Sequence record: NC_042081.1
Length of the DNA: 64,000 nucleotides
Strand: one strand, 5' to 3'
Position numbers and translations under genes: made by a program. The notes under the pieces are model-generated. The model was not told where the DNA came from, did no database searches, and was given only the letters and a program-made list of their open reading frames with translations. This document shows positions 2,193 through 44,048 of the stretch, one piece after another (positions within the stretch are counted from its first letter, which is position 1; every line of letters begins with the position of its first letter).

Positions 2193-3641
2193 ATGTCAGA
2201 CGGTATGGTTTTATACACTGACGGATCATTCCGACAGGGTAAAGCTGGTTGGGGTATTCATGGTTATACCTATGAAAATGTTGCAATGAAATCTAAAGCA
2301 GCCACCAAACAGCAACCAACAGCTAAGGGATACTTAGATGTAGGTGCAGATGAGACATGCACTGTTTTAAATTATATTGATGCATTTGGTAGTGTAACTA
2401 ATAACCCTACTAATAATACAGGTGAGCTAACCGCTGCAATTGAGGCTTTCAAAATAGCCCATGAAGCAGATGCACCTAGACTAACGATGCTCATGGATAG
2501 TGAATACGTTAGAAAAGGTATGACCGCATATTTACCCAAATGGATTAAGTCCAATTGGATTAAATCAGACGGTACACCGGTAGCAAACCAGGACCTATGG
2601 AAACAGATGGTCGAACTAAAAGCTAAATGGGAAGAAACTAATAAACCATTAAGCATCCAATGGGTCCGCGGTCATAACGGAGACATTGGTAATGAAAAAG
2701 CTGATGCTAATGCTAAGCTTGGTTCGGGACAGAATAATGATAAGCCAGTGATGGTTTCGGTTAAAGGCGAAGAAATTAACAAACTTAAAAAACAAGTTGT
2801 TAATCCACTTATCCTCGAAAGTAGGTTACTCTTCGCCATTAACTCTGGAGAAGAACCAGATGGGTTCTATTACACCTATAATTTAGGTCGTATGCATAAC
2901 TATGGTCATAAACCAAAAGACACTGCTAAAGATAAACTAGCTAAAGCTGATTTAATTTTAGGGCGTCGTATCTCTGAAGCAACCTTCAGTGTATATAAGG
3001 CAAATGAGCCAGATGAGTATCTCCAGTTACTAATTAATATGCATACAGAAGCACTGGGTACTGAAAATCCAGAACTGGGTATCATCAATTTGGCAAACGC
3101 ATATCGTGCAACCATTCGACAGAAAATTGAATCCATGGGACTACCTGCTCTAGTCGTATGGAAAGATATCAATGTTTTGTCGACGCCAACAGATGAACTC
3201 ATTAGTCGGACTCTTAATCCACCACGTATGGCAAATGATGCTGTAGCTACATTTAATGTTATGCGCAGTCGTCTTGAAGATTACTTGGCTGGTAAACTTG
3301 GAGAGTCGGTTGGTATTATTGATATTACCGAGCACTTCTTCGAGGAAGTCGCAAAGGGTAAGAAAGTTGGCTATCAACTACTTAAGACGATTACATCTAA
3401 TACAGGCTTTGTAGAAGTTCCGATCACATTTAAAGATCGTAAGATAAAATTAAAGCTTGTATTAAATATCGATATTCCAAGTAGAAACCAATTAGCTCGT
3501 ATCGGAGCTAATAAAGTTAAAATGGAAATTCTTGTAGTAGCTGAAGGTCCATATTCTTATTCATATTCAATTGTGTTTGTGACGGATGATGGCTCAGCTA
3601 TCTATCAATCACCCTATACACAATTTATTCTCCCAAAATAG
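2193..3641 (+). CDS. rnhA: RNase HI with long C-terminal extension (gp155)
   Basis: LYTDGS, NNTGELTAAIEA, MDSEY, NQDLW, WVRGHNGDIGNEKADANA RNase H motifs; GAGG RBS. Confidence 0.95.
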   Translation: MSDGMVLYTDGSFRQGKAGWGIHGYTYENVAMKSKAATKQQPTAKGYLDVGADETCTVLNYIDAFGSVTNNPTNNTGELTAAIEAFKIAHEADAPRLTMLMDSEYVRKGMTAYLPKWIKSNWIKSDGTPVANQDLWKQMVELKAKWEETNKPLSIQWVRGHNGDIGNEKADANAKLGSGQNNDKPVMVSVKGEEINKLKKQVVNPLILESRLLFAINSGEEPDGFYYTYNLGRMHNYGHKPKDTAKDKLAKADLILGRRISEATFSVYKANEPDEYLQLLINMHTEALGTENPELGIINLANAYRATIRQKIESMGLPALVVWKDINVLSTPTDELISRTLNPPRMANDAVATFNVMRSRLEDYLAGKLGESVGIIDITEHFFEEVAKGKKVGYQLLKTITSNTGFVEVPITFKDRKIKLKLVLNIDIPSRNQLARIGANKVKMEILVVAEGPYSYSYSIVFVTDDGSAIYQSPYTQFILPK

Positions 3642-3651
3642 TGGGTATTCC

Positions 3652-4071
3652 ATGAACCTTATTAGCAGATTCAAAAAGTCGGTTAAGAATGGTTTCAGGG
3701 CAATTTGGATTAAGCTCTGGGACTATGCTGATCCCGAACTAAAGCGGATGTGCGTCATGGCGTCACTGTACTCCGTTATAGTACAGTGTAAGACAAATGA
3801 GTGTGAAAAGATCTCTCATTTGAATTCTAACATGAAACTAGTACGCGATGAAGCTGCCTTACGACTCCCTATTCATTATGGGCCGTACGTATGGAAAGGC
3901 GTGATAGCAATCGATAAGATTGATAAAGCAGATCTAACCACTGATCAATTTTTCATGAGGCTTATTCGTAAGACTCCGTGTTGGATGAAATATGCTGATG
4001 ATGCAACTTTTTTAAAGGATTTGAAAACCCTCTTTAAATTAAGTTTACATGAGAAGTGTATTCCAAATTGA
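3652..4071 (+). CDS. Hypothetical protein (gp154 position)
   Basis: ORF between rnhA and a terminator; start moved to MNLISRF to avoid overlap. Confidence 0.7.
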   Translation: MNLISRFKKSVKNGFRAIWIKLWDYADPELKRMCVMASLYSVIVQCKTNECEKISHLNSNMKLVRDEAALRLPIHYGPYVWKGVIAIDKIDKADLTTDQFFMRLIRKTPCWMKYADDATFLKDLKTLFKLSLHEKCIPN

Positions 4072-4080
4072 TTGGTACGA

Positions 4081-4114
4081 CATAATGCCCTCTCCTTTTG
4101 GGAGAGGGCTTATG
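4081..4114. terminator. Bidirectional hairpin terminator between convergent genes
   Basis: gccctctcc-ttttg-ggagagggc flanked by cataat and ttatg. Confidence 0.85.
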
Positions 4115-4117
4115 CTG

Positions 4118-5032
4118 TTATCCAATGATTTCACGAAGAATATCTTCAGTGGCTTTCATTGTGTTCGCAGTCTCAACAATCTTAGTAAAGAGTGTTGAAT
4201 AACGTTCAACATGGTCTGCTGCCCATGTAACCCCTTCAATTAATGTCTGTAACAGCTCTGGAGAGGTGTCAGAGTTACTATCCTTAACATCCTCCATAAA
4301 GCTATCAATTAATTGACTAAGCGCTTCTGAAGCACGTTTTACATCATTTGGACGAACCCGTGATAAAATGCTACGAATATCGTTCATTTTCTTTGTTGCA
4401 TCAACAAATGAATTTAATGATGGGTAAAGCTTACCAAACTCAGCTGTACTTGACCGGTTGTCACTGTCATAGAAGGAAGCATCTTTAGCAAGGTCATTAA
4501 TCGATGCCATTGCAAATGAATTAGCAAAGCCACGCTTATCCATTCGATCAACACGCTGTTGTAGGTAATACCCAAGTTGTGCTTTAACCGGGTCTAATAC
4601 TGCTGGAATAATAGTGGCCATTTCCTTAGCTTCTGTTAATAGATAATCAACATAGTCTGGAATCTCACCATTAAAACCAACTGGTTGTGGCACGATTGTA
4701 TTTGTTACTTCTAAATAATCAATGTGTGAAACCAAATGGCGCATCTGCGCTGGATGGAACTCAGGAATAATTTGATTACTCCAGTTAGTCATTGACGTAA
4801 ATGCATTACGAGCAGCGATAGCAAAATTAGCGCCGCGTTTATTGATAATGTTAATAGCGTTTGTTGCGAAATTAGCTTCTTGAGAAATAGTCTCAGTAAC
4901 ATCTACAAGCTGTTGCTTTGGATCAACTTGTACTAAACTAATATCATCATTAACAATATTGTCAGATTCAATTAGATCCTGACAATCATTTTCTAGTGAA
5001 ATACTTTTAGCGTATTTATGGATGTTAAACAT
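4118..5032 (-). CDS. Internal head protein (gp153-like)
   Basis: 304 aa; N-terminal SLE-N matches the S/A/G-x-E site of the phiKZ prohead protease gp175; gene order. Confidence 0.7.
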   Translation of the reverse strand: MFNIHKYAKSISLENDCQDLIESDNIVNDDISLVQVDPKQQLVDVTETISQEANFATNAINIINKRGANFAIAARNAFTSMTNWSNQIIPEFHPAQMRHLVSHIDYLEVTNTIVPQPVGFNGEIPDYVDYLLTEAKEMATIIPAVLDPVKAQLGYYLQQRVDRMDKRGFANSFAMASINDLAKDASFYDSDNRSSTAEFGKLYPSLNSFVDATKKMNDIRSILSRVRPNDVKRASEALSQLIDSFMEDVKDSNSDTSPELLQTLIEGVTWAADHVERYSTLFTKIVETANTMKATEDILREIIG

Positions 5033-5074
5033 GTCTTAATTTCCTTGCGCAAGGATTGTTGAATATGTAGACAT

Positions 5075-5082
5075 AAAATTAC
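5075..5082 (+). promoter_or_regulatory. Putative middle promoter (AAAATTAC)
   Basis: Matches the phiKZ middle consensus AAanntTAC, upstream of RecA; same 8-mer upstream of DnaB. Confidence 0.5.
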
Positions 5083-5128
5083 TCTCCAAATCAATTAATT
5101 GACTGTTTAACTTAAAAATGGAGTCAAC

Positions 5129-6568
5129 ATGTTTGGTAAACATTTCGAACGTCCAGCTTTCCGACCTGCTCTTAATATCGGATGCCTTATGGACATTTCA
5201 ACTGGTAAGTATGAACAAGGTAAGCATGGTGAAATGATCCTAAATGGCGGTATGGGATCACTAACTGGTATTGCTTCACGACCTAACAATTTTAAAACTG
5301 CATTAGGTATCTACCTTATGGCAATGATGCGCCGTGCTTTCCCCGGTGCACATGCAATGACTTATGATACAGAAGGTACATTAAACCCAGGTGCTCGATT
5401 TACATCTTTAGCACAAGCTTATCCTGAGCTAGCTGCTATTGATTGGGAAAATGATGAGCAATACATGTTTACTGACTTATCTCGTTATACTGGGGATGAG
5501 TGGTTCAAAATCTTCCGAGATGCATTATCTGAAAAAGAGAAAGCTGAAAAAGATTATCTACGCACTACCCCATTTCTTGATGTGAATGGTAATAATAAGA
5601 AAGCACTGTACCCAACTGGTGGGTTCATTGATAGTTTCTCAAAGTTCATTGTCTCAGCTGTGTCTGAAATGTATGCTAAAAATGCTATCGGTGATTCTAA
5701 AGTAAACACTGATGCAATGACTAATGGTAAAGCCAAGAATCAGTTATTTAACCAACTGCCGCAGATCTGTGCTAAAACCAGTACATACATGATTCTCACT
5801 GCACACGTTGGAGATATTATTCAAATTGAGATGTACCCTACTGATAAACGTAATCTATCGCATATGAAGAAGGATACGGTTCTTAAAGGGGTATCAGGTG
5901 GTTTCTACTCTCTGCCGAATAATGTGTTTTCTATTGAATCTAATAAACCGTTAGTCAATAAAGAAAAAATGCCTTTATATCCAATTGACAATTCAACTGC
6001 TATTGAAGGCGATACAGATCTACGTATTCTAGAAGTTATTAACTTACGTGGTAAAGGTGGAATTACTGGTCTACCATTCCATCTCATTGTTTCACAGACT
6101 GAAGGTATTCTTCCATCACTATCGGAATTCCATTATTGCCGTGAAAATGATTGGGGGATTGGTGGTAATAACATTAACTACTTCGTTGAGCTATGTCCTG
6201 ATATCAAACTAAGCCGAACCACTGTTCGTAAGAAATTGATGGATAACCCTGCTCTACAACGAGCTGTTGAAATCCAATCTGAAATGCTACAATTAATTCA
6301 ATTCCAACGTTGGAATCTTGGAGATTATGTAGTAACTCCAGCTGAACTGTATGCTGATCTTAAAGTAATGGGTTATGATTGGGATATCATTCTTAATAAT
6401 ACTCGTGGCTATTGGATGTTCGAAGAAGACGAACAGTTTAGTGATAAAAAATTCCTATCAACGTATGACCTACTACGCATGCGTAAAAGTGAATATAAAC
6501 CATACTGGATGACTGACGAAGAAAAAGCTAAAATTGTACCTCTTGAACTAGCTAAAGCAAAAGCTTAA
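5129..6568 (+). CDS. recA: RecA/UvsX-like recombinase (gp152)
   Basis: Divergent Walker A SRPNNFKT, YDTE, Walker B FIDS, ILTAH; GGAG RBS; gene order. Confidence 0.9.
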   Translation: MFGKHFERPAFRPALNIGCLMDISTGKYEQGKHGEMILNGGMGSLTGIASRPNNFKTALGIYLMAMMRRAFPGAHAMTYDTEGTLNPGARFTSLAQAYPELAAIDWENDEQYMFTDLSRYTGDEWFKIFRDALSEKEKAEKDYLRTTPFLDVNGNNKKALYPTGGFIDSFSKFIVSAVSEMYAKNAIGDSKVNTDAMTNGKAKNQLFNQLPQICAKTSTYMILTAHVGDIIQIEMYPTDKRNLSHMKKDTVLKGVSGGFYSLPNNVFSIESNKPLVNKEKMPLYPIDNSTAIEGDTDLRILEVINLRGKGGITGLPFHLIVSQTEGILPSLSEFHYCRENDWGIGGNNINYFVELCPDIKLSRTTVRKKLMDNPALQRAVEIQSEMLQLIQFQRWNLGDYVVTPAELYADLKVMGYDWDIILNNTRGYWMFEEDEQFSDKKFLSTYDLLRMRKSEYKPYWMTDEEKAKIVPLELAKAKA

Positions 6569-12300: not shown

Positions 12301-12676
12301 AACGACCTTTTACAGGGGGATCTTCATTACCTAGCGGTGATTCCCATACCCATAGCCGATCTTCAACGAACCAAGCATCACCGACATTATGCGTATCTAA
12401 TGGTTTAATATCTTGTTCGAATGTTGCTAGATCAACATTAGCGATAATGTTAATAGCCGGACCAACTGGGCCAGGGGGACCTTGATCGCCATCTTTACCC
12501 GGCTGACCATCTTCACCCTTTAATCCAGGTATAGTAACAGGATCAACGAAAGTGGTATTAAGACCCACCCCGGTAGAAACCGGGATGTGTCCATTAACTA
12601 CAGAAGTGGGTTCATCAATTGATGATACCCGTTTGGGGAGTTCCCCGTTTACATAATCTTCAAATGCAGAAGCCAT
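9395..12676 (-). CDS. Collagen-like virion fibre protein (gp146-like)
   Basis: Many G-X-Y runs alternating with globular modules, YVR...W repeats, C-terminal beta domain; TAATG coupling to the upstream gene. Confidence 0.85.
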   Translation of the reverse strand: MASAFEDYVNGELPKRVSSIDEPTSVVNGHIPVSTGVGLNTTFVDPVTIPGLKGEDGQPGKDGDQGPPGPVGPAINIIANVDLATFEQDIKPLDTHNVGDAWFVEDRLWVWESPLGNEDPPVKGRWVETGSLRGPDGTGLVIRGRWPNNLELPKTESNKPGDAYSWNNQLWAWMLISGNNPPENPTIDDYDWFPVTPQGERGPEGPEGPQGKDGEIGPEGPQGEPAMPFTIKDSLPSPADLPDPSVAKESEAYLVTMEAGKPEHLFIFVKGAWSDLGTFQGPEGPQGKPGNTGDPGPDGKQGEPGPQGRNLEVVKAVETADDLLTTTGVEQYQGVSVRSTNTVYVLTGQDPTVDISWTAMGSFRGPQGPEGPQGEDGEQGLPGEPGAQGKSAFQVALDNGFTGTEGEWLISLHGKNVVITGAVANEAALPADAPDQAAYFTQDTSTLFVKIDGNWVNSGTHRGPKGEDGAPGKDGDQGPEGPEGPEGPQGPAGEPIQIIAAIDTPEDTPPEALADNQWKAYTVKSTGEVFVNMDGSRWTSIGIMAGPQGKPGEGLNIKGVLTDASQLPKKDTDPDLVTGDSYWVETNEGTMLYTYQGQEIDGYIGPINLNGEQGIQGVEGPQGPEGKQGGGLLIIYVGDDAGKPVASADNVGKGIAIRTNTEGQVEVFVSIDTEGTFTWESLGVLAMGPQGPEGPEGKQGVPGIPGKTGQKGERGSSWVILPEGQTAPTSIDGNRGDWCIDKTGTVWYKDANWVVFYKLMSVPVSEVDPEDVDKKMVRYKLGWTELPVDEVVDAEVGVFYGRRKATADGAVEWTAIELPTPAIDAVPSPVVNAQYVRKGIAGGETEWATITFPEIPSDVVRDTAQATKPQGRVAGNWVDVAPLQTDDTLMGMQNGEWVAVPAAVIGEVPSEGANGTNYVREKTASGSKWTPVTIIVDQADATSGQLFLRNAAAKSWTLFQGPNNDVTADGDWVRSRTGTNITWKKLDKSFDVYSLKSSTFTGTALTLTPANQQCYRVQTTANQTITLENGPVDRMITAVLVLLGKVAMPTLSSAVLQWNNGTPVIVDDLGDTKTVLTLLWDGTNWIVSKGAVI

Positions 12677-15045
12677 TATACTACTTCCTCAAGTTCGATT
12701 TTCATCAGTCCAGTGGTGTTGGATACAGCATTTGCTGAGTCACAGTTATACCACTTATTGCCATCCTTGATGGTGTAGGTGTCAACTTGATTTGCATCAT
12801 CCGCCTTATAAGTGAAGTTTAAGCTACCAGTAGAACCTTTAGATAGGTTACTGCAACGTAGTTTACCAGTATTGGTTACTTCAGTACCAATATCAGTTTC
12901 ACGGTTCGGCCAAGCAGCCACACTTAGAGTGCGGAATACAAATCCACCTAGTACATAAGTACCACCATTTACACTATTAGCTTCAACACCAGCTAAACCT
13001 TTTAGAACCACACTGTTAAAATCGTAGGTTCCTTTAGGATCATCGTCATGTACTAGTAATGCACGTGTCCATACCTTACCAGTGGCATCAGATTTCCAAT
13101 CCTCAGTAGCCCACTTACCGCCAGGCGCATTCATGGCCGGAGCTGCACTTAGTTTCTGAGTAGAGGTTAAAGTAATGACATGACTTTGTACTTGGGTTCC
13201 AAAGTTACCACCTGAACGAAGGCGAGCAGCAGGGTAGGTAACCGTCGCAGTAGGTACCGCATTTGCAATAGCTACAACAGCAGTAGCTGTAGCTACACTA
13301 CCATTAGCTGCACGTTTAGCAGTAATTAATAGGTTATTAGTGCTGTCGTTATAAGTACCTGACTTATAAGTAACTACCTTAGCAATTTCTGCTTCATTTG
13401 CACTGGTTATAGTAAGCTGATCATTTGGTGAGGAATAAACCACACTATCAGCATTAGATACCGTATTGGCTACAGTAGCAGTTTCACCTACTTTAATAGC
13501 ACTTTGACCAGACGGATAAGTTACTTGACCAATATTAACAACTGGGCGAAGATCGTTTAACTGCATAGTGTTAATTTTATCTTCGGAACCAGCATCACTG
13601 GAAGTAAACCATTCTGACCATGATCCAGTTGATTTCTGAACACGTACACGGAAACCATATGCCTTAGTAGTATTACCACGATCAGCTACGTAAAGACCAG
13701 TAACCTCTAGTTCTTTAGTAGGTGCAACAGTACCACTACTTTCTTTCAGTGCACCAAAGTCAGCAATTTCGTATGCTACTATATTTTCATCAGTAACAAC
13801 TTTAATTGCAACAAGGTCATCTTCTTTAAGTTCTGTTTGACCTAACGGATAACCGCCAGTAAATACAGCACTGGTAATATTAGCGGGAGTATCGGCTAAT
13901 ACCTTAGTAGTGAATTTAGCCCCATCGGCGTGTTCTACAACAATATCAGCATAACCTTCAGTAGTAGGTGCACCAAGATCAATATCGGCGGTAGCAATCC
14001 ACATAGGTGGATTAACGCCAGGAGTTACAACTGCATCTACGTTATTGATTTTAACACTAGGTACATAACTAGAATGTCCAGTTATTGCATCAACGATAAC
14101 CCGAACATTACTAGTAGTCGATAGGCATGACTGTACGCTGTGTCCATCAGGGGTACGCACAATACTACCTACGTTCTGACTGGGATCAGTTGCTTGTACA
14201 TCTTTGACGAATACACCGCCACTAATACCTTCGTTTTTAGGAAGGTTCTTAAGATCAACAATTGTTTCATCAACGCCTTCAACAATACGGATATTGCCGT
14301 CATTCTTGAATGCAATGTAATCAGTTAAACTACCAATCTGGAATTCACCATTGTCATAAATACGAATTTCAGACTCAGGTAATTCGGGTAATGCACCTTG
14401 CGTAGTGGGTGCAGAGGCGTTCTTTAGATAAGAATAACCTTCTGCCTCCATACGACCTTGTTCCATCATACGCTGAGGTACTTTATCACCAGCAGTTAAG
14501 TCGTCTTGATTTAGACGCTTATCAAACAGGAAAGCAAAGTTATGGAAAGCAGCGTTGGATGATAATCCACCATTCTTACCAGTTACACGCAGTACATCTT
14601 TAACTGTATAGCCTTGTTGATTTAAGAGTGTCTGGAGTAGTTCAGCAGTCATGGTTGCATGCAGTGATGTTAACCATTCCTGTTCAGTACCTTGGAAACC
14701 ATTTTCCACAGCTACTTCATATGCACTCTTACCAGCATCACCTTTAAGGGATGCTATAAACTCTTCTTCAGTACCAACGAAGCCTAGATCGACTGCGATT
14801 TGATAAGAAGATTTACCTTTAAGCGAATCAAGCCATTCGGTTTCAGTTCCCTGGAAACCATTTTTAACGGCAATCTCGTACGCACTAAGACCGGGTGCCC
14901 CAGTCTGTAGTTTTGACAGCAGAAACTTATAGTTATCGACTTGACCAGCTGCATCGGTATGAATTAATTCAATATACTCGCTATCGTTAAGAGTAGCTAG
15001 ATCCGGCAGTTGACTGATCTTGCCTTTGTCTGTAGCATTTGCCAT
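12676..15045 (-). CDS. Virion fibre protein (gp145-like)
   Basis: N-terminal KISQLP segment, three SAYE-x-AV-x-NGF-x-GTE-x-EWL-x-SL repeats, beta-rich Ig-like C-terminal two-thirds; AAGGA RBS. Confidence 0.8.
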   Translation of the reverse strand: MANATDKGKISQLPDLATLNDSEYIELIHTDAAGQVDNYKFLLSKLQTGAPGLSAYEIAVKNGFQGTETEWLDSLKGKSSYQIAVDLGFVGTEEEFIASLKGDAGKSAYEVAVENGFQGTEQEWLTSLHATMTAELLQTLLNQQGYTVKDVLRVTGKNGGLSSNAAFHNFAFLFDKRLNQDDLTAGDKVPQRMMEQGRMEAEGYSYLKNASAPTTQGALPELPESEIRIYDNGEFQIGSLTDYIAFKNDGNIRIVEGVDETIVDLKNLPKNEGISGGVFVKDVQATDPSQNVGSIVRTPDGHSVQSCLSTTSNVRVIVDAITGHSSYVPSVKINNVDAVVTPGVNPPMWIATADIDLGAPTTEGYADIVVEHADGAKFTTKVLADTPANITSAVFTGGYPLGQTELKEDDLVAIKVVTDENIVAYEIADFGALKESSGTVAPTKELEVTGLYVADRGNTTKAYGFRVRVQKSTGSWSEWFTSSDAGSEDKINTMQLNDLRPVVNIGQVTYPSGQSAIKVGETATVANTVSNADSVVYSSPNDQLTITSANEAEIAKVVTYKSGTYNDSTNNLLITAKRAANGSVATATAVVAIANAVPTATVTYPAARLRSGGNFGTQVQSHVITLTSTQKLSAAPAMNAPGGKWATEDWKSDATGKVWTRALLVHDDDPKGTYDFNSVVLKGLAGVEANSVNGGTYVLGGFVFRTLSVAAWPNRETDIGTEVTNTGKLRCSNLSKGSTGSLNFTYKADDANQVDTYTIKDGNKWYNCDSANAVSNTTGLMKIELEEVV

Positions 15046-15250: not shown

Positions 15251-16072
<822 letters not shown>

Positions 16073-16094: not shown

Positions 16095-16628
16095 TTAACT
16101 TTCTAGATAACGGATTTGACCATTTTCTAGATAACGTGCTGCACCATTCTCTAATAGTCGGATAGTATCTGACGTATCATCAATACGTTGAATTAGTATA
16201 TTACAGTCACCATAGTAAGCATAACTACTCGACATAGCTACTATCGTGTATGGAACAACATCCGTAGTTGCATTGATTGGTGTTGTATCAAATGAAACAT
16301 CATCTGGTCCAAGCTTCCAACCTCGTGAACGGTTAATTTCTTCAGCAATTGCTTTAGGTGTTAAAGTACCAACTATCTTAAGAATAGATCCTTCACCAAT
16401 AGCACGTGGATCAGCAAAATCTAACCGACGGTAAGTTAACATGTACTTAATGTCAGTAGTAATGTCGATCATTTCAATAAATGTACGTCCAGGCTCAATC
16501 GTGGTTGGACTAAAAAACATATCTTCAAATGTAACTGTTTCTGGTTTGAAGTTTATTTTTAAATCATCCCGCGCAAGTTTTACTAGCGCGTTCCTCGATG
16601 CCATGTCATACGGAAAGATATCCTGCAT
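16095..16628 (-). CDS. Virion structural protein (gp143 position), gp126/gp127-like domain plus C-terminal RxLENG triple repeat
   Basis: TYRRLDF motif shared with gp127; C-terminus IRLLENGAARYLENGQIRYLES; GAGG RBS. Confidence 0.75.
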   Translation of the reverse strand: MQDIFPYDMASRNALVKLARDDLKINFKPETVTFEDMFFSPTTIEPGRTFIEMIDITTDIKYMLTYRRLDFADPRAIGEGSILKIVGTLTPKAIAEEINRSRGWKLGPDDVSFDTTPINATTDVVPYTIVAMSSSYAYYGDCNILIQRIDDTSDTIRLLENGAARYLENGQIRYLES

Positions 16629-41723: not shown

Positions 41724-41804
41724 TTACTCTTCTAACTTCCGGGCATTACCGTCTTCCAAATAACGGATAGTCCCATTTTCTAGATAACGGTAACCCTTTC
41801 CAGC
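41724..41804 (-). other. In-frame 26-codon extension after the capsid TGA (putative readthrough domain)
   Basis: Translates AGKGYRYLENGTIRYLEDGNARKLEE then TAA; matches the gp143 C-terminus. Confidence 0.75.
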
Positions 41805-44048
41805 TCACGGTTTAAGATCAGCAAGCTTACCGTTGAACTGAGTTTCGCCCATGACTTTCTGGAAGCCAGTGATCTTGAACTCTAGTGCGAACGGAATGTT
41901 GTTGACGTGTAGGTTGAACGGAATGGCCGCGATTTCGCGAGTAACCTGGTGACCACCACGAGTGATCGGTAGGTCAGCGATAACAGTAGATACGTAGAAG
42001 AACTGACCCCAGGAGAGGATGTCGTTTTCTTGTTGTACTGCGCGGGTCGGAATTACAACTAGCTTACCATCAAATAGCTGGTTGTTGGTGGAAACGATAT
42101 CGTACTTGAGATAAGCACCTAGAGTACGGTCGTCACCTTTAGTCATTAGATAGTTAGCAATCTCTTTGTCGGAGCAGAAGAGATACATCGGAGTTTCATC
42201 CTGGTTACCGGAGATAACACGGAAGGCAGCTTCAATGTTGGAATCACGGTGAGCCGGGAATAGCTCAGCTTTAACACAGTTTAGGATCGCAGCGCAAACG
42301 TCGTCCCAACGATCTTTAGACTTGATGGTGTCGATGACTTTCTCAAGATCTAGTTCTTTGTAACGATAGGTCGGACGCATTACAGCGGATAGTGCACCTT
42401 CGATGATACCAAACTTCGGACGGTTGTAACCATTGTGTACAACTTCACGTAGTTGAGCAAGGTAGTTAAGCATGCGCTTAACAGCGTTGTTGCTGTTACG
42501 GATGTTGGTGTTAACAGTTAGAGCTTTAACAACCTCACCCGGACCTTCATCGGTCATGGTGTCCATCGGTAGAGTTACAGGAGCGTGCATCGGGATCGGA
42601 TGACGGAACTGTAGCGCACGGGTCTGTAGTAGGTGACCACGCTGACGACGGTTAGTGTTGGTGAAGCGAGTGTCTAGTTCGAAACCGATAACCGCTAGGT
42701 CAGTTAGCTGATCTAGAATAGCTTTAACAGCCGGGTCAGCATTATCCATTACCTGACCATCTTCGTTTAGAACTTTATCGACGTAAGTGTCGGTAGCACC
42801 AAACTTAGAATCGCCTTTGGATAGGCTGATTGTACCACCAAAACCAACGCTTAGACGTAGGCTTAGTTTAGCGGTCTTAAGATCATTGATAACACCGTCA
42901 GCTGAACCATCGATGAAAGTGGTATCGCCACTAACAACTAGATCGTCGCTATCGAAACGGATAACAGCGTTCCGGGTATCACCAACTAGATCGGGCTGGA
43001 ACACAGCGCGAGGTAGACGGTCAACCTTGAACTTAACAACTTTACCACCGAGTAGAACGAATAGGTTCTTTAGACGACCAGCCGGATCAATGGTGTCAGA
43101 AACTTCAAGCATGCCACGCTGGATGAGTAGGTTAGCATTGGAGTTACCCATTAGATCAAGACGTACGTTCGCTTTTAGCGGAGCAGTAGTGATAGTTAGG
43201 TTCTGCTCGTTCTTGATGGTGTACGGAGGAACAAGAGCCGGGTCTACGAAGAAGTCAGCATTGGAGCCAGCCGGATCTAGGGCAGGAATTAGCGCAATGC
43301 TTTCGTCGTCGAGGATGGAAGGATCACGATAGGCTTCTACCATGTTCACTTCTTCATTATCCATCTTAACGCCGGATACTTCGTGGTAAACGTCTTTCAT
43401 TACAGCGATGTAAGGAAGAACCTGAACAACACCACCTTCAATCGGGTTGATAACGGTGGTCGGATAAATACGCTCAGCGAATTCATCTTGACGGCTAGCA
43501 GCTAGGTTATAACCAATAGTTACAACACGGAAATCACGCTGTGACTTCTCGTTATAGTTCTCTAGGCCAACACCATTTTCGAATACTTGAATGCCACCAG
43601 CGGGGCCATTGAACTGATGCTGTACAACCTTAACATGATCTTCATTAGAAGCTTTAGCTTTGGTAATACCACGTAGTGCACGGATATATTTAGTTTCATC
43701 AGCACAGGCGATAGCAGCCATGGTAGCAGCGGTGATCTGGTTCTCACGGACACGTTCTTCACGAGCGCGTACTTGAGGATCACTGGAGCTTACTCGTTCG
43801 AAACCATAGTCGTTAACGAGCATTTGCATTTTGTTATAAATTGCAGCAGCATCTTGAACGTCGGTAGCTTGTACGGTACCGAAGTTTTCATGTGAAATGG
43901 TGCTAACAAGGGAACGACCTTGACTAACAACGCTGTCATTTAGACCAATTTCACTTTCTAGGCGACCAATGAAATCTTCCATTGAGAAGACTTCGTATTT
44001 CTTTTCGCCTTTGTGTTTAAACAGTTCTCTTAGGGCATGTACGCTCAT
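41805..44048 (-). CDS. gp120: Major capsid protein
   Basis: 747 aa; GLE-N maturation site; high-expression codon bias; gene order. Confidence 0.95.
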   Translation of the reverse strand: MSVHALRELFKHKGEKKYEVFSMEDFIGRLESEIGLNDSVVSQGRSLVSTISHENFGTVQATDVQDAAAIYNKMQMLVNDYGFERVSSSDPQVRAREERVRENQITAATMAAIACADETKYIRALRGITKAKASNEDHVKVVQHQFNGPAGGIQVFENGVGLENYNEKSQRDFRVVTIGYNLAASRQDEFAERIYPTTVINPIEGGVVQVLPYIAVMKDVYHEVSGVKMDNEEVNMVEAYRDPSILDDESIALIPALDPAGSNADFFVDPALVPPYTIKNEQNLTITTAPLKANVRLDLMGNSNANLLIQRGMLEVSDTIDPAGRLKNLFVLLGGKVVKFKVDRLPRAVFQPDLVGDTRNAVIRFDSDDLVVSGDTTFIDGSADGVINDLKTAKLSLRLSVGFGGTISLSKGDSKFGATDTYVDKVLNEDGQVMDNADPAVKAILDQLTDLAVIGFELDTRFTNTNRRQRGHLLQTRALQFRHPIPMHAPVTLPMDTMTDEGPGEVVKALTVNTNIRNSNNAVKRMLNYLAQLREVVHNGYNRPKFGIIEGALSAVMRPTYRYKELDLEKVIDTIKSKDRWDDVCAAILNCVKAELFPAHRDSNIEAAFRVISGNQDETPMYLFCSDKEIANYLMTKGDDRTLGAYLKYDIVSTNNQLFDGKLVVIPTRAVQQENDILSWGQFFYVSTVIADLPITRGGHQVTREIAAIPFNLHVNNIPFALEFKITGFQKVMGETQFNGKLADLKP

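Follow-up and report, generated by a model that had tools for sequence, protein, structure and literature searches.

The 64,000-nucleotide stretch of DNA analyzed here (the window) matches positions 124001 to 188000 of NC_042081 at 100% identity and comes from Pseudomonas phage SL2, a phiKZ-like member of Phikzvirus. Homologs of the phiKZ genes for gp143, the endolysin gp144, gp145, and gp146 follow one another in that order on its minus strand. Our subject is the first 62 residues of gp145 (14860 to 15045), comprising a 46-residue N-terminal module and the beginning of the first fiber repeat, together with a short repetitive peptide, the tag, that ends gp143 and recurs behind the stop codon of the capsid gene. 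From sequence comparisons we favor, with moderate confidence, a reading in which the N terminus of gp145 is the fiber half of a conserved docking joint and the three-unit tag is the other half.

The original prediction, made from the letters of this DNA, had described gp145 as beginning with a characteristic sequence ahead of its fiber repeats, lying two genes from gp143, and being translationally coupled to gp146, and these descriptions held. The open reading frame (ORF) of gp145 opens with MANATDKGKISQLPDLATLNDSEYIELIHTDAAGQVDNYKFLLSKL, three repeats follow the module, the endolysin gene stands between gp145 and gp143, and the gp145 stop codon and gp146 start codon overlap as TAATG. The first 50 residues are 96 to 100% identical across 48 phiKZ-like records and 33 to 42% identical in phages PhiPA3, Phabio, Psa21, D6, RVTF4, and Noxifer, each of which has one or two fiber genes with a gp145-type N terminus.

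Beyond the module, PHROG tail-fiber families matched gp145 at residues 47 to 147 only (E values of 1e-10 to 1e-21), and a Pfam search of the protein, repeats included, gave no match at E 0.1; PF22337 matched an environmental module-bearing fiber directly after its module. By tblastn, gp145-type repeats were present in 439 phage records. We rejected the label “tail sheath” under which gp145 appears in RefSeq and PHROG 15433: no Pfam sheath family matched, the cross-family PHROG matches all fell on fiber repeats, and the phiKZ sheath is gp29. The mislabel has spread to dozens of phiKZ-like records. A transposon insertion sequencing (TnSeq) study of phiKZ counts gp145 and gp146 among the putative tail fibers, both free of insertions. 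GenBank notes for phage 201phi2-1 record the homologs of gp143 and gp145/gp146 as detected in virions by mass spectrometry, evidence that is soft because spanin and holin homologs are listed there too.

The gp145 module and the three-unit tag

The module, which we call KIS, was defined here from loci in IMG/VR by the motif K-I-[ST]-x-[LM] ... E-x-[IV] ... N-[KV]-[KR]. Neither the module nor the tag is in Pfam or the PDB, the module is not in the PHROGs annotation, and neither turned up in the papers open to our search. A hidden Markov model (HMM) was built from 14 environmental modules, leaving chimallivirus sequences out, and searched against 627 ORFs from the window and nine chimallivirus loci. 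It matched fiber N termini only: RP12 (E value of 1.7e-5), SL2 gp145 at residues 9 to 29 (3.9e-4), Noxifer (4.5e-4), and Phabio (0.015). Among the ORFs of the window, gp145 was the sole match. The converse profile, made from chimallivirus sequences only, retrieved environmental modules at the starts of their ORFs. Conservation in the joint alignment is at least 90% in the columns of gp145 residues K9, I10, and E26, and N38 is invariant; the second half of the module is divergent in gp145, with N-Y-K instead of N-K-K. Because profiles from either side find the other, the gp145 N terminus is best described as a divergent member, and on this evidence it belongs to a widespread, uncatalogued family of fiber modules.

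An AlphaFold2 prediction for gp145 residues 1 to 50 from a 20-sequence alignment had a mean predicted local distance difference test score of 78.9, with values of 80 to 91 at residues 11 to 50. It placed an extended arm before a hairpin (strands 24 to 30 and 36 to 42) and a short helix (43 to 47). The family as a whole would consist of an extended arm bearing K-I-S-x-L, a beta-hairpin bearing E-x-[IV] and N-K-K, and a short helix.

Single-sequence and catalogue searches returned little. A word-based protein search with gp145 residues 1 to 60 found its own cluster only, a related-locus search with the single gp145 sequence found no relatives, and nine N termini had no match in Pfam. The PHROG search returned the self family and a weak match to phrog_1957. 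Searching the PDB with the gp145 and gp143 sequences gave no match, and PDB profile searches with the module and tag profiles gave no significant match (all E values above 0.2). A tblastn match in Anoxybacillus phage A403 lies inside a large hypothetical protein upstream of a distal tail protein gene and was set aside as chance; matches of Vequintavirus, phAPEC8-like, and Streptomyces sequences to residues 8 to 50 are internal fiber domains, not N-terminal modules.

The tag has the consensus (R-x-L-E-x-G-x-x)2-R-x-L-E, with a period of eight residues. gp143 ends in RLLENGAARYLENGQIRYLES, and behind the TGA that closes the capsid gene (41805 to 44048) the frame continues with AGKGYRYLENGTIRYLEDGNARKLEE up to a stop codon; both peptides fit the consensus. 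When the gp143 tail was aligned with 15 environmental tags, R12, E15, R20, E23, and R28 were invariant and the fit held residue for residue. Of the 69 unique tags collected from all loci, 64 consist of exactly three units, and 64 have their last R..E pair 0 to 2 residues from the C terminus. A scan of the whole SL2 genome found one module, that of gp145, and no tags besides those on gp143 and after the capsid TGA; gp126 and gp127 have none. A single internal R-L-I-E-N-G at SL2 114872 to 114888 on the minus strand, some 44 residues from the C terminus of an 830-residue hypothetical protein, is probably a chance occurrence.

The tag carrier gp143 scored 18 bits against Pfam DUF7941 (PF25613), below the cut-off of 27; orthologs of equal length scored above it, with 99.8 bits for Ea35-70 and 36.9 bits for RP12, and hhalign gave a probability of 90% over the full length. 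AlphaFold2 gave gp143 a moderately confident core and, outside it, a low-confidence tail with single beta-bridges every eight residues. The core contains a hairpin, GRTFIEMID-ITTD-IKYMLTYRRL (16424 to 16489, minus strand), that resembles the gp145 hairpin SEYIELIH-TDAAGQ-VDNYKFLLSKL (14920 to 14976, minus strand) in sequence pattern and in predicted secondary structure (gp143 strands 48 to 55 and 60 to 67). A comparison of gp145 N termini with the gp143 family by hhalign aligned the two hairpins without significance (probability 0.8%, P 0.067). DUF7941 N-domains, should this likeness be genuine, may receive tails as the module does.

In 201phi2-1 and Viktualia, the gp143 homologs (loci L019 and L021, 7932 to 8552) have 23 extra annotated N-terminal residues, probably from a wrong start, and end in a decayed tag, RYTESDLIRYTEVGVERELEH, plus six further residues. 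The fiber modules of these two phages are the most divergent, with WKTFS in place of YKNYR.

Adjacency and co-distribution of tag and module

A rule stated in the original prediction, that fibers starting K-I-S-x-L-[PT] lie near proteins with L-x-E-[DN]-G repeats, proved strong in both directions. We searched IMG/VR at the DNA level for the unit R-x-L-E-[DN]-G-x-x encoded twice in succession and obtained 55 loci where, by our own estimate, about 0.7 chance matches were expected. The match lies 6 to 9 residues ahead of a stop codon in about 45 of the 55, which marks the tag as a strictly C-terminal element. Fifteen of the 33 unique tags with a downstream ORF are followed, within -4 to +13 nucleotides, by the start of a module ORF beginning M-A-x-x-K-I-[ST]-x-L...E-[ILV]-V-Q-G-G-x-N-K-K. 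The remaining tags fall into few families, with the module gene farther on: one gene away in jumbo phages, at distances of 0.5 kb and 2 kb in two loci, and at 7.5 kb in the tail-tube family.

The reverse scan selected 45 IMG/VR loci by the module motif alone, 37 of them on new contigs. A tag-ending ORF stops at most 236 nucleotides upstream of the module gene in 28 of these 37, and within -20 to +1 nucleotides of it in 25 of the 28. C-terminal tags were found nowhere else in the module-first loci, on either strand. Because the two scans agree, we regard the association as near-obligate in both directions. The proteins that carry the tag are otherwise unrelated and include P2 gpI-like proteins (PF09684), DUF2612 proteins (PF11041), gpJ-like phrog_1101, phrog_376, tail tube proteins (PF06199), and DUF7941 proteins; the module-bearing fibers, for their part, share only the module. 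Tag-like stretches of 26 to 28 codons also lie behind capsid genes of jumbo phages.

The tagged tail tube proteins belong to siphophages and were seen at 11 loci; on one of these, contig L067, a module gene follows 7.5 kb farther downstream. On four related contigs, a 161-residue module-bearing protein follows a tag-ending DUF2612 protein. Should both groups of contigs derive from related phages, a single small fiber could attach to the tube as well as to the baseplate, paralleling the two tags of phiKZ.

Among chimalliviruses, Ralstonia phage RP12 has, away from any lysis genes, a DUF7941 protein whose tag has decayed; immediately downstream of it comes a fiber starting ...YYRITDLPPAAPITGAEVVEAVQDGKNVKF. 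Erwinia phage Ea35-70 encodes a 177-residue DUF7941 protein (E value of 2.5e-28) with a variant tag, ending LLTESGQWLTTEDGQPLKLESVA, about 55 nucleotides upstream of a module-bearing collagen fiber starting MADNTPLPISGLPAGAAIDGTELVPVVQQGKTVKI. The endolysin gene does not lie between the two genes in either phage. Across ten distant chimalliviruses, the two elements occurred together or were jointly missing in nine. Both are in Ea35-70, and neither is in Goslar, CR5, RSF1, RTH11, FLC9, pVp-JHP1101, SA002, or Moabite; a pattern match in CR5 was discarded, as it has an in-frame TGA inside. The tenth, Klebsiella phage phiKp24, has a weak module alone, the start MSNETQKISELNPATTLTEHTLFPVV (locus L141, 1501 to 1566) of a 687-residue fiber or spike ORF. 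Tag and module have been gained and lost together within Chimalliviridae. According to the Goslar paper, Goslar encodes ten DUF7941 proteins; because none of them bears a tag, the tag is not a general DUF7941 feature and appears where the module appears.

Table 1. Features of the SL2 window that bear on the candidate docking joint, in window coordinates
Feature	Position	Strand	Basis or remark
gp146 homolog, collagen-like distal fiber (putative), 1093 aa	9395-12676	minus	collagen repeats, Pfam E 1e-24
gp145 homolog, candidate fiber adaptor protein, 789 aa	12676-15045	minus	ORF, PHROG and Pfam searches
gp145 C terminus GLMKIELEEVV, directly before gp146-type gene	12679-12711	minus	conserved in PhiPA3 gp165, PA1C, Noxifer
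gp145 residues 47-136, three ~28-aa repeats SAYE-x-AV-x-NGF-x-GTE-x-EW-L-x-SL-x-G	14638-14907	minus	PHROG matches
gp145 residues 1-46, candidate KIS fiber anchor module (K9-I10-S11-Q12-L13-P14 ... E23-Y-I-E26-L-I ... N38-Y-K ... L46)	14908-15045	minus	sequence, HMM, alignment, AlphaFold2
Endolysin gp144	15251-16033	minus	separates tag carrier from fiber in Pseudomonas clade only
gp143 homolog, probable DUF7941-family member, tag carrier, 177 aa	16095-16628	minus	Pfam sub-threshold, orthologs, hhalign
gp143 three-unit tag RLLENGAA-RYLENGQI-RYLES, last 21 residues	16098-16160	minus	sequence, alignment, AlphaFold2
26-codon in-frame tag AGKGY-RYLENGTI-RYLEDGNA-RKLEE behind capsid TGA (41805-41807)	41727-41804	minus	sequence, whole-genome scan

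A candidate docking joint and its alternatives

In the joint we propose, the tag would be a portable C-terminal peptide appended to whichever virion protein carries the fiber, be it a baseplate wedge, tail hub, tail tube, or DUF7941 protein. SL2 has a single module, on gp145, and its only tags are those of gp143 and of the capsid TGA; gp145 is therefore most likely an adaptor onto the gp143 tail. It would plug the gp145-gp146 fiber onto gp143, whose probable family, DUF7941, sits on the peripheral baseplate. Tag and module would touch directly, probably with the tag added as a beta-strand to the hairpin; the AlphaFold2 predictions, with a confident hairpin in the module and a periodic, low-confidence tail for the tag, speak for the joint. 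That tags come in three units hints at one unit for each subunit of a trimeric fiber, which we offer as a conjecture.

The gp145-gp146 end of this fiber appears to have a joint of its own. The gp145-type C terminus follows the pattern NCD-x-ANA-x-SNT-x-GLM-x-[IV]-ELEE-[VA]-[VI], and the gene after it begins MA-x-x-FE-x-[FY]-VNGELPKR (12560 to 12676 in the window, minus strand); PhiPA3 has two genes with this gp146-type start, encoding gp166 and gp167. The conserved end and start probably form a second joint. Phabio, Psa21, RVTF4, and 201phi2-1 have the module fused directly onto a gp146-like fiber, an arrangement that fits gp145 and gp146 as one serial fiber. On this model gp145 would serve as the adaptor, its N-terminal module plugging in and its conserved C terminus holding the collagen-like gp146.

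A solved structure might already show such a joint. In phage crAss001 (PDB 7QOJ, 7QOL, and 8CKB), the trimeric fiber gp22 is held by its N terminus in the tail hub (two copies of THA gp38 plus THB gp39), and the crAss001 paper describes the hub as the docking site of that N terminus. The module and tag profiles independently picked two chains of this one complex, gp22 and THB gp39, each at a nonsignificant E value of about 0.7. The last 20 residues of THB gp39 are RITEDSILRSTEDDNFRVEA, a tag-like peptide of three R-x-T-E-D-x-x-x units (RITEDSIL-RSTEDDNF-RVEA), and gp22 residues 28 to 62 align with the module's second half. gp22 differs in having no K-I-S start and about 20 extra N-terminal residues, and the gp22 and gp39 genes are not adjacent. 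The crAss001 paper has THB residues 67 to 107 reaching into the neighboring hub and does not describe them as gripping the fiber.

Several observations weigh against the docking reading. The environmental HMM matched gp145 modestly and at residues 9 to 29 only, and the crAss001 matches are weak, with E values of about 0.7 against the PDB and 3.3e-4 within the locus (L127, 23063 to 23407 for gp39 and 2727 to 5225 for gp22). Nine of the 37 new module loci have no nearby tag and no obvious variant of it, and the phiKp24 genome has no tag despite its module-like fiber. A structural atlas of phiKZ, with 40 proteins modeled, assigns the visible fibers to gp131, gp133, gp134, and gp135 and does not mention gp143, gp145, or gp146. 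In the Goslar paper, AlphaFold models have DUF7941 linkers docking on the N-domains of DUF7941 proteins instead. In the phiKZ TnSeq study, orf143 took five insertions and is dispensable, and gp145 and gp146 took none, so that gp143 is not the sole mount of an essential fiber. A study of the lysis cassette describes gp143 as a cytoplasmic protein that regulates the holin gp142. The original prediction of the gp145 N terminus as receptor for the tag thus fared unevenly: the module family, the fit of the gp143 tail to the tag, and the adjacency of the two speak for it, and the dispensability of orf143 and the holin-regulator role tell against gp143 as a simple mount.

The dispensability of gp143 alongside the intolerance of gp145 and gp146 to insertion would be expected if the gp145 N terminus were an ordinary anchor on an untagged peripheral baseplate protein, tag and module being neighbors through a shared joint or a third partner. 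Some module-bearing fibers do lack a nearby tag, and the crAss001 fiber segment modeled inside the hub is residues 1 to 26, ahead of the module-like residues 28 to 62. We nevertheless consider such an anchor unlikely. Carriers of at least six unrelated families share the tag alone, and the fibers share the module alone; the alternative would also need a third partner conserved across myophages, siphophages, and jumbo phages.

It is more improbable still that the gp143 tail serves gp143 itself, in DUF7941 polymerization or in regulation of holin gp142, with the gene order a matter of inherited synteny. According to the Goslar paper, DUF7941 proteins, phiKZ gp126, gp127, and gp143 among them, form filaments head to tail on the peripheral baseplate, and for Goslar gp22 both filaments and AlphaFold models of head-to-tail contacts would suit a role in polymerization. 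Effects of gp143 on lysis timing and a predicted contact with the N-domain of the holin would suit a role in regulation. The likeness of the gp143 core hairpin (TFIEMID...KYMLTYR) to that of gp145 also speaks for this alternative. Goslar, however, for all its ten DUF7941 proteins, lacks both tag and module, as do seven other chimalliviruses, and the same tag occurs on non-DUF7941 carriers in phages without DUF7941. The gp143-holin contact predicted in the lysis-cassette study falls in the globular domain that comes first in gp143 and not in the tail, and in RP12 and Ea35-70 the DUF7941 and fiber genes stay adjacent without being part of the lysis cassette. Finally, a small, confident hairpin-helix directly before trimeric-type repeats could be a mere folding or trimerization nucleus with no docking role, but this is very improbable, as it would leave unexplained both the near-obligate adjacency to tag-ending genes and the co-loss of tag and module in most chimalliviruses.

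The capsid tag and known fiber attachments

If gp145 does dock on tags, the peptide behind the capsid TGA, reached through putative readthrough, would offer a second mounting site, for gp145/gp146 head fibers, a possibility we put forward tentatively. A small fraction of capsid subunits would then be tagged, and readthrough efficiency would set the number of head fibers. The C-terminal arms of the phiKZ capsid protein are reported to meet at the capsomer center and, at pentons, to touch the outer protein gp244; because the arms meet there, a C-terminal extension would emerge where head fibers could bind. crAss001 gp21 and gp29 occupy hexon pockets as head fibers or decoration at the capsid center, and the phiKZ extension would emerge at a similar place. 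Unlike crAss001, phiKZ has no reported head fiber, and its handle would come from putative stop-codon readthrough.

The Goslar gp22/gp23 and phiKZ gp126-gp127 filaments offer another likeness. They consist of DUF7941 proteins, as gp143 probably is, and a flexible tail has been proposed to extend the beta-sheet of the next protein. Host-recognition domains hang on these Goslar-type chains as the proposed fiber would on gp143. In Goslar those domains are fused to DUF7941, with no tag or module, whereas the phiKZ-type link would be noncovalent and made by tag and module.

In P2-like and T4-like myophages, the fiber is held by its N terminus at the baseplate wedge, as with P2 gpH, which lies next to gpI, or the DUF2612 wedge of PB1-type phages. 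Several tag loci resemble P2 and PB1 in that the carrier upstream of the fiber gene is a gpI-like or DUF2612 wedge protein. The P2- and T4-type joints are folded, family-specific domains, whereas the tag (about 21 to 22 residues) and the module (about 45 residues) appear portable between unrelated proteins. Seen broadly, the pair may be a general plug-and-socket of phages that phiKZ uses twice, hard-coded on gp143 and by programmed UGA readthrough on the capsid, a generalization we regard as speculative.

gp145 and gp146 received no transposon insertions yet stand outside the 40-protein atlas, and the docking reading gives a testable answer to how they are attached. If it is true, the recurrence of a short movable tag on unrelated carriers, together with a small module cognate to it, would add a new rule to what is known of how phages are built. 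Fiber docking sites and fiber genes could then be identified from sequence alone, improving annotation, and the swapping of module-bearing fibers could provide a handle for re-targeting laboratory phages.

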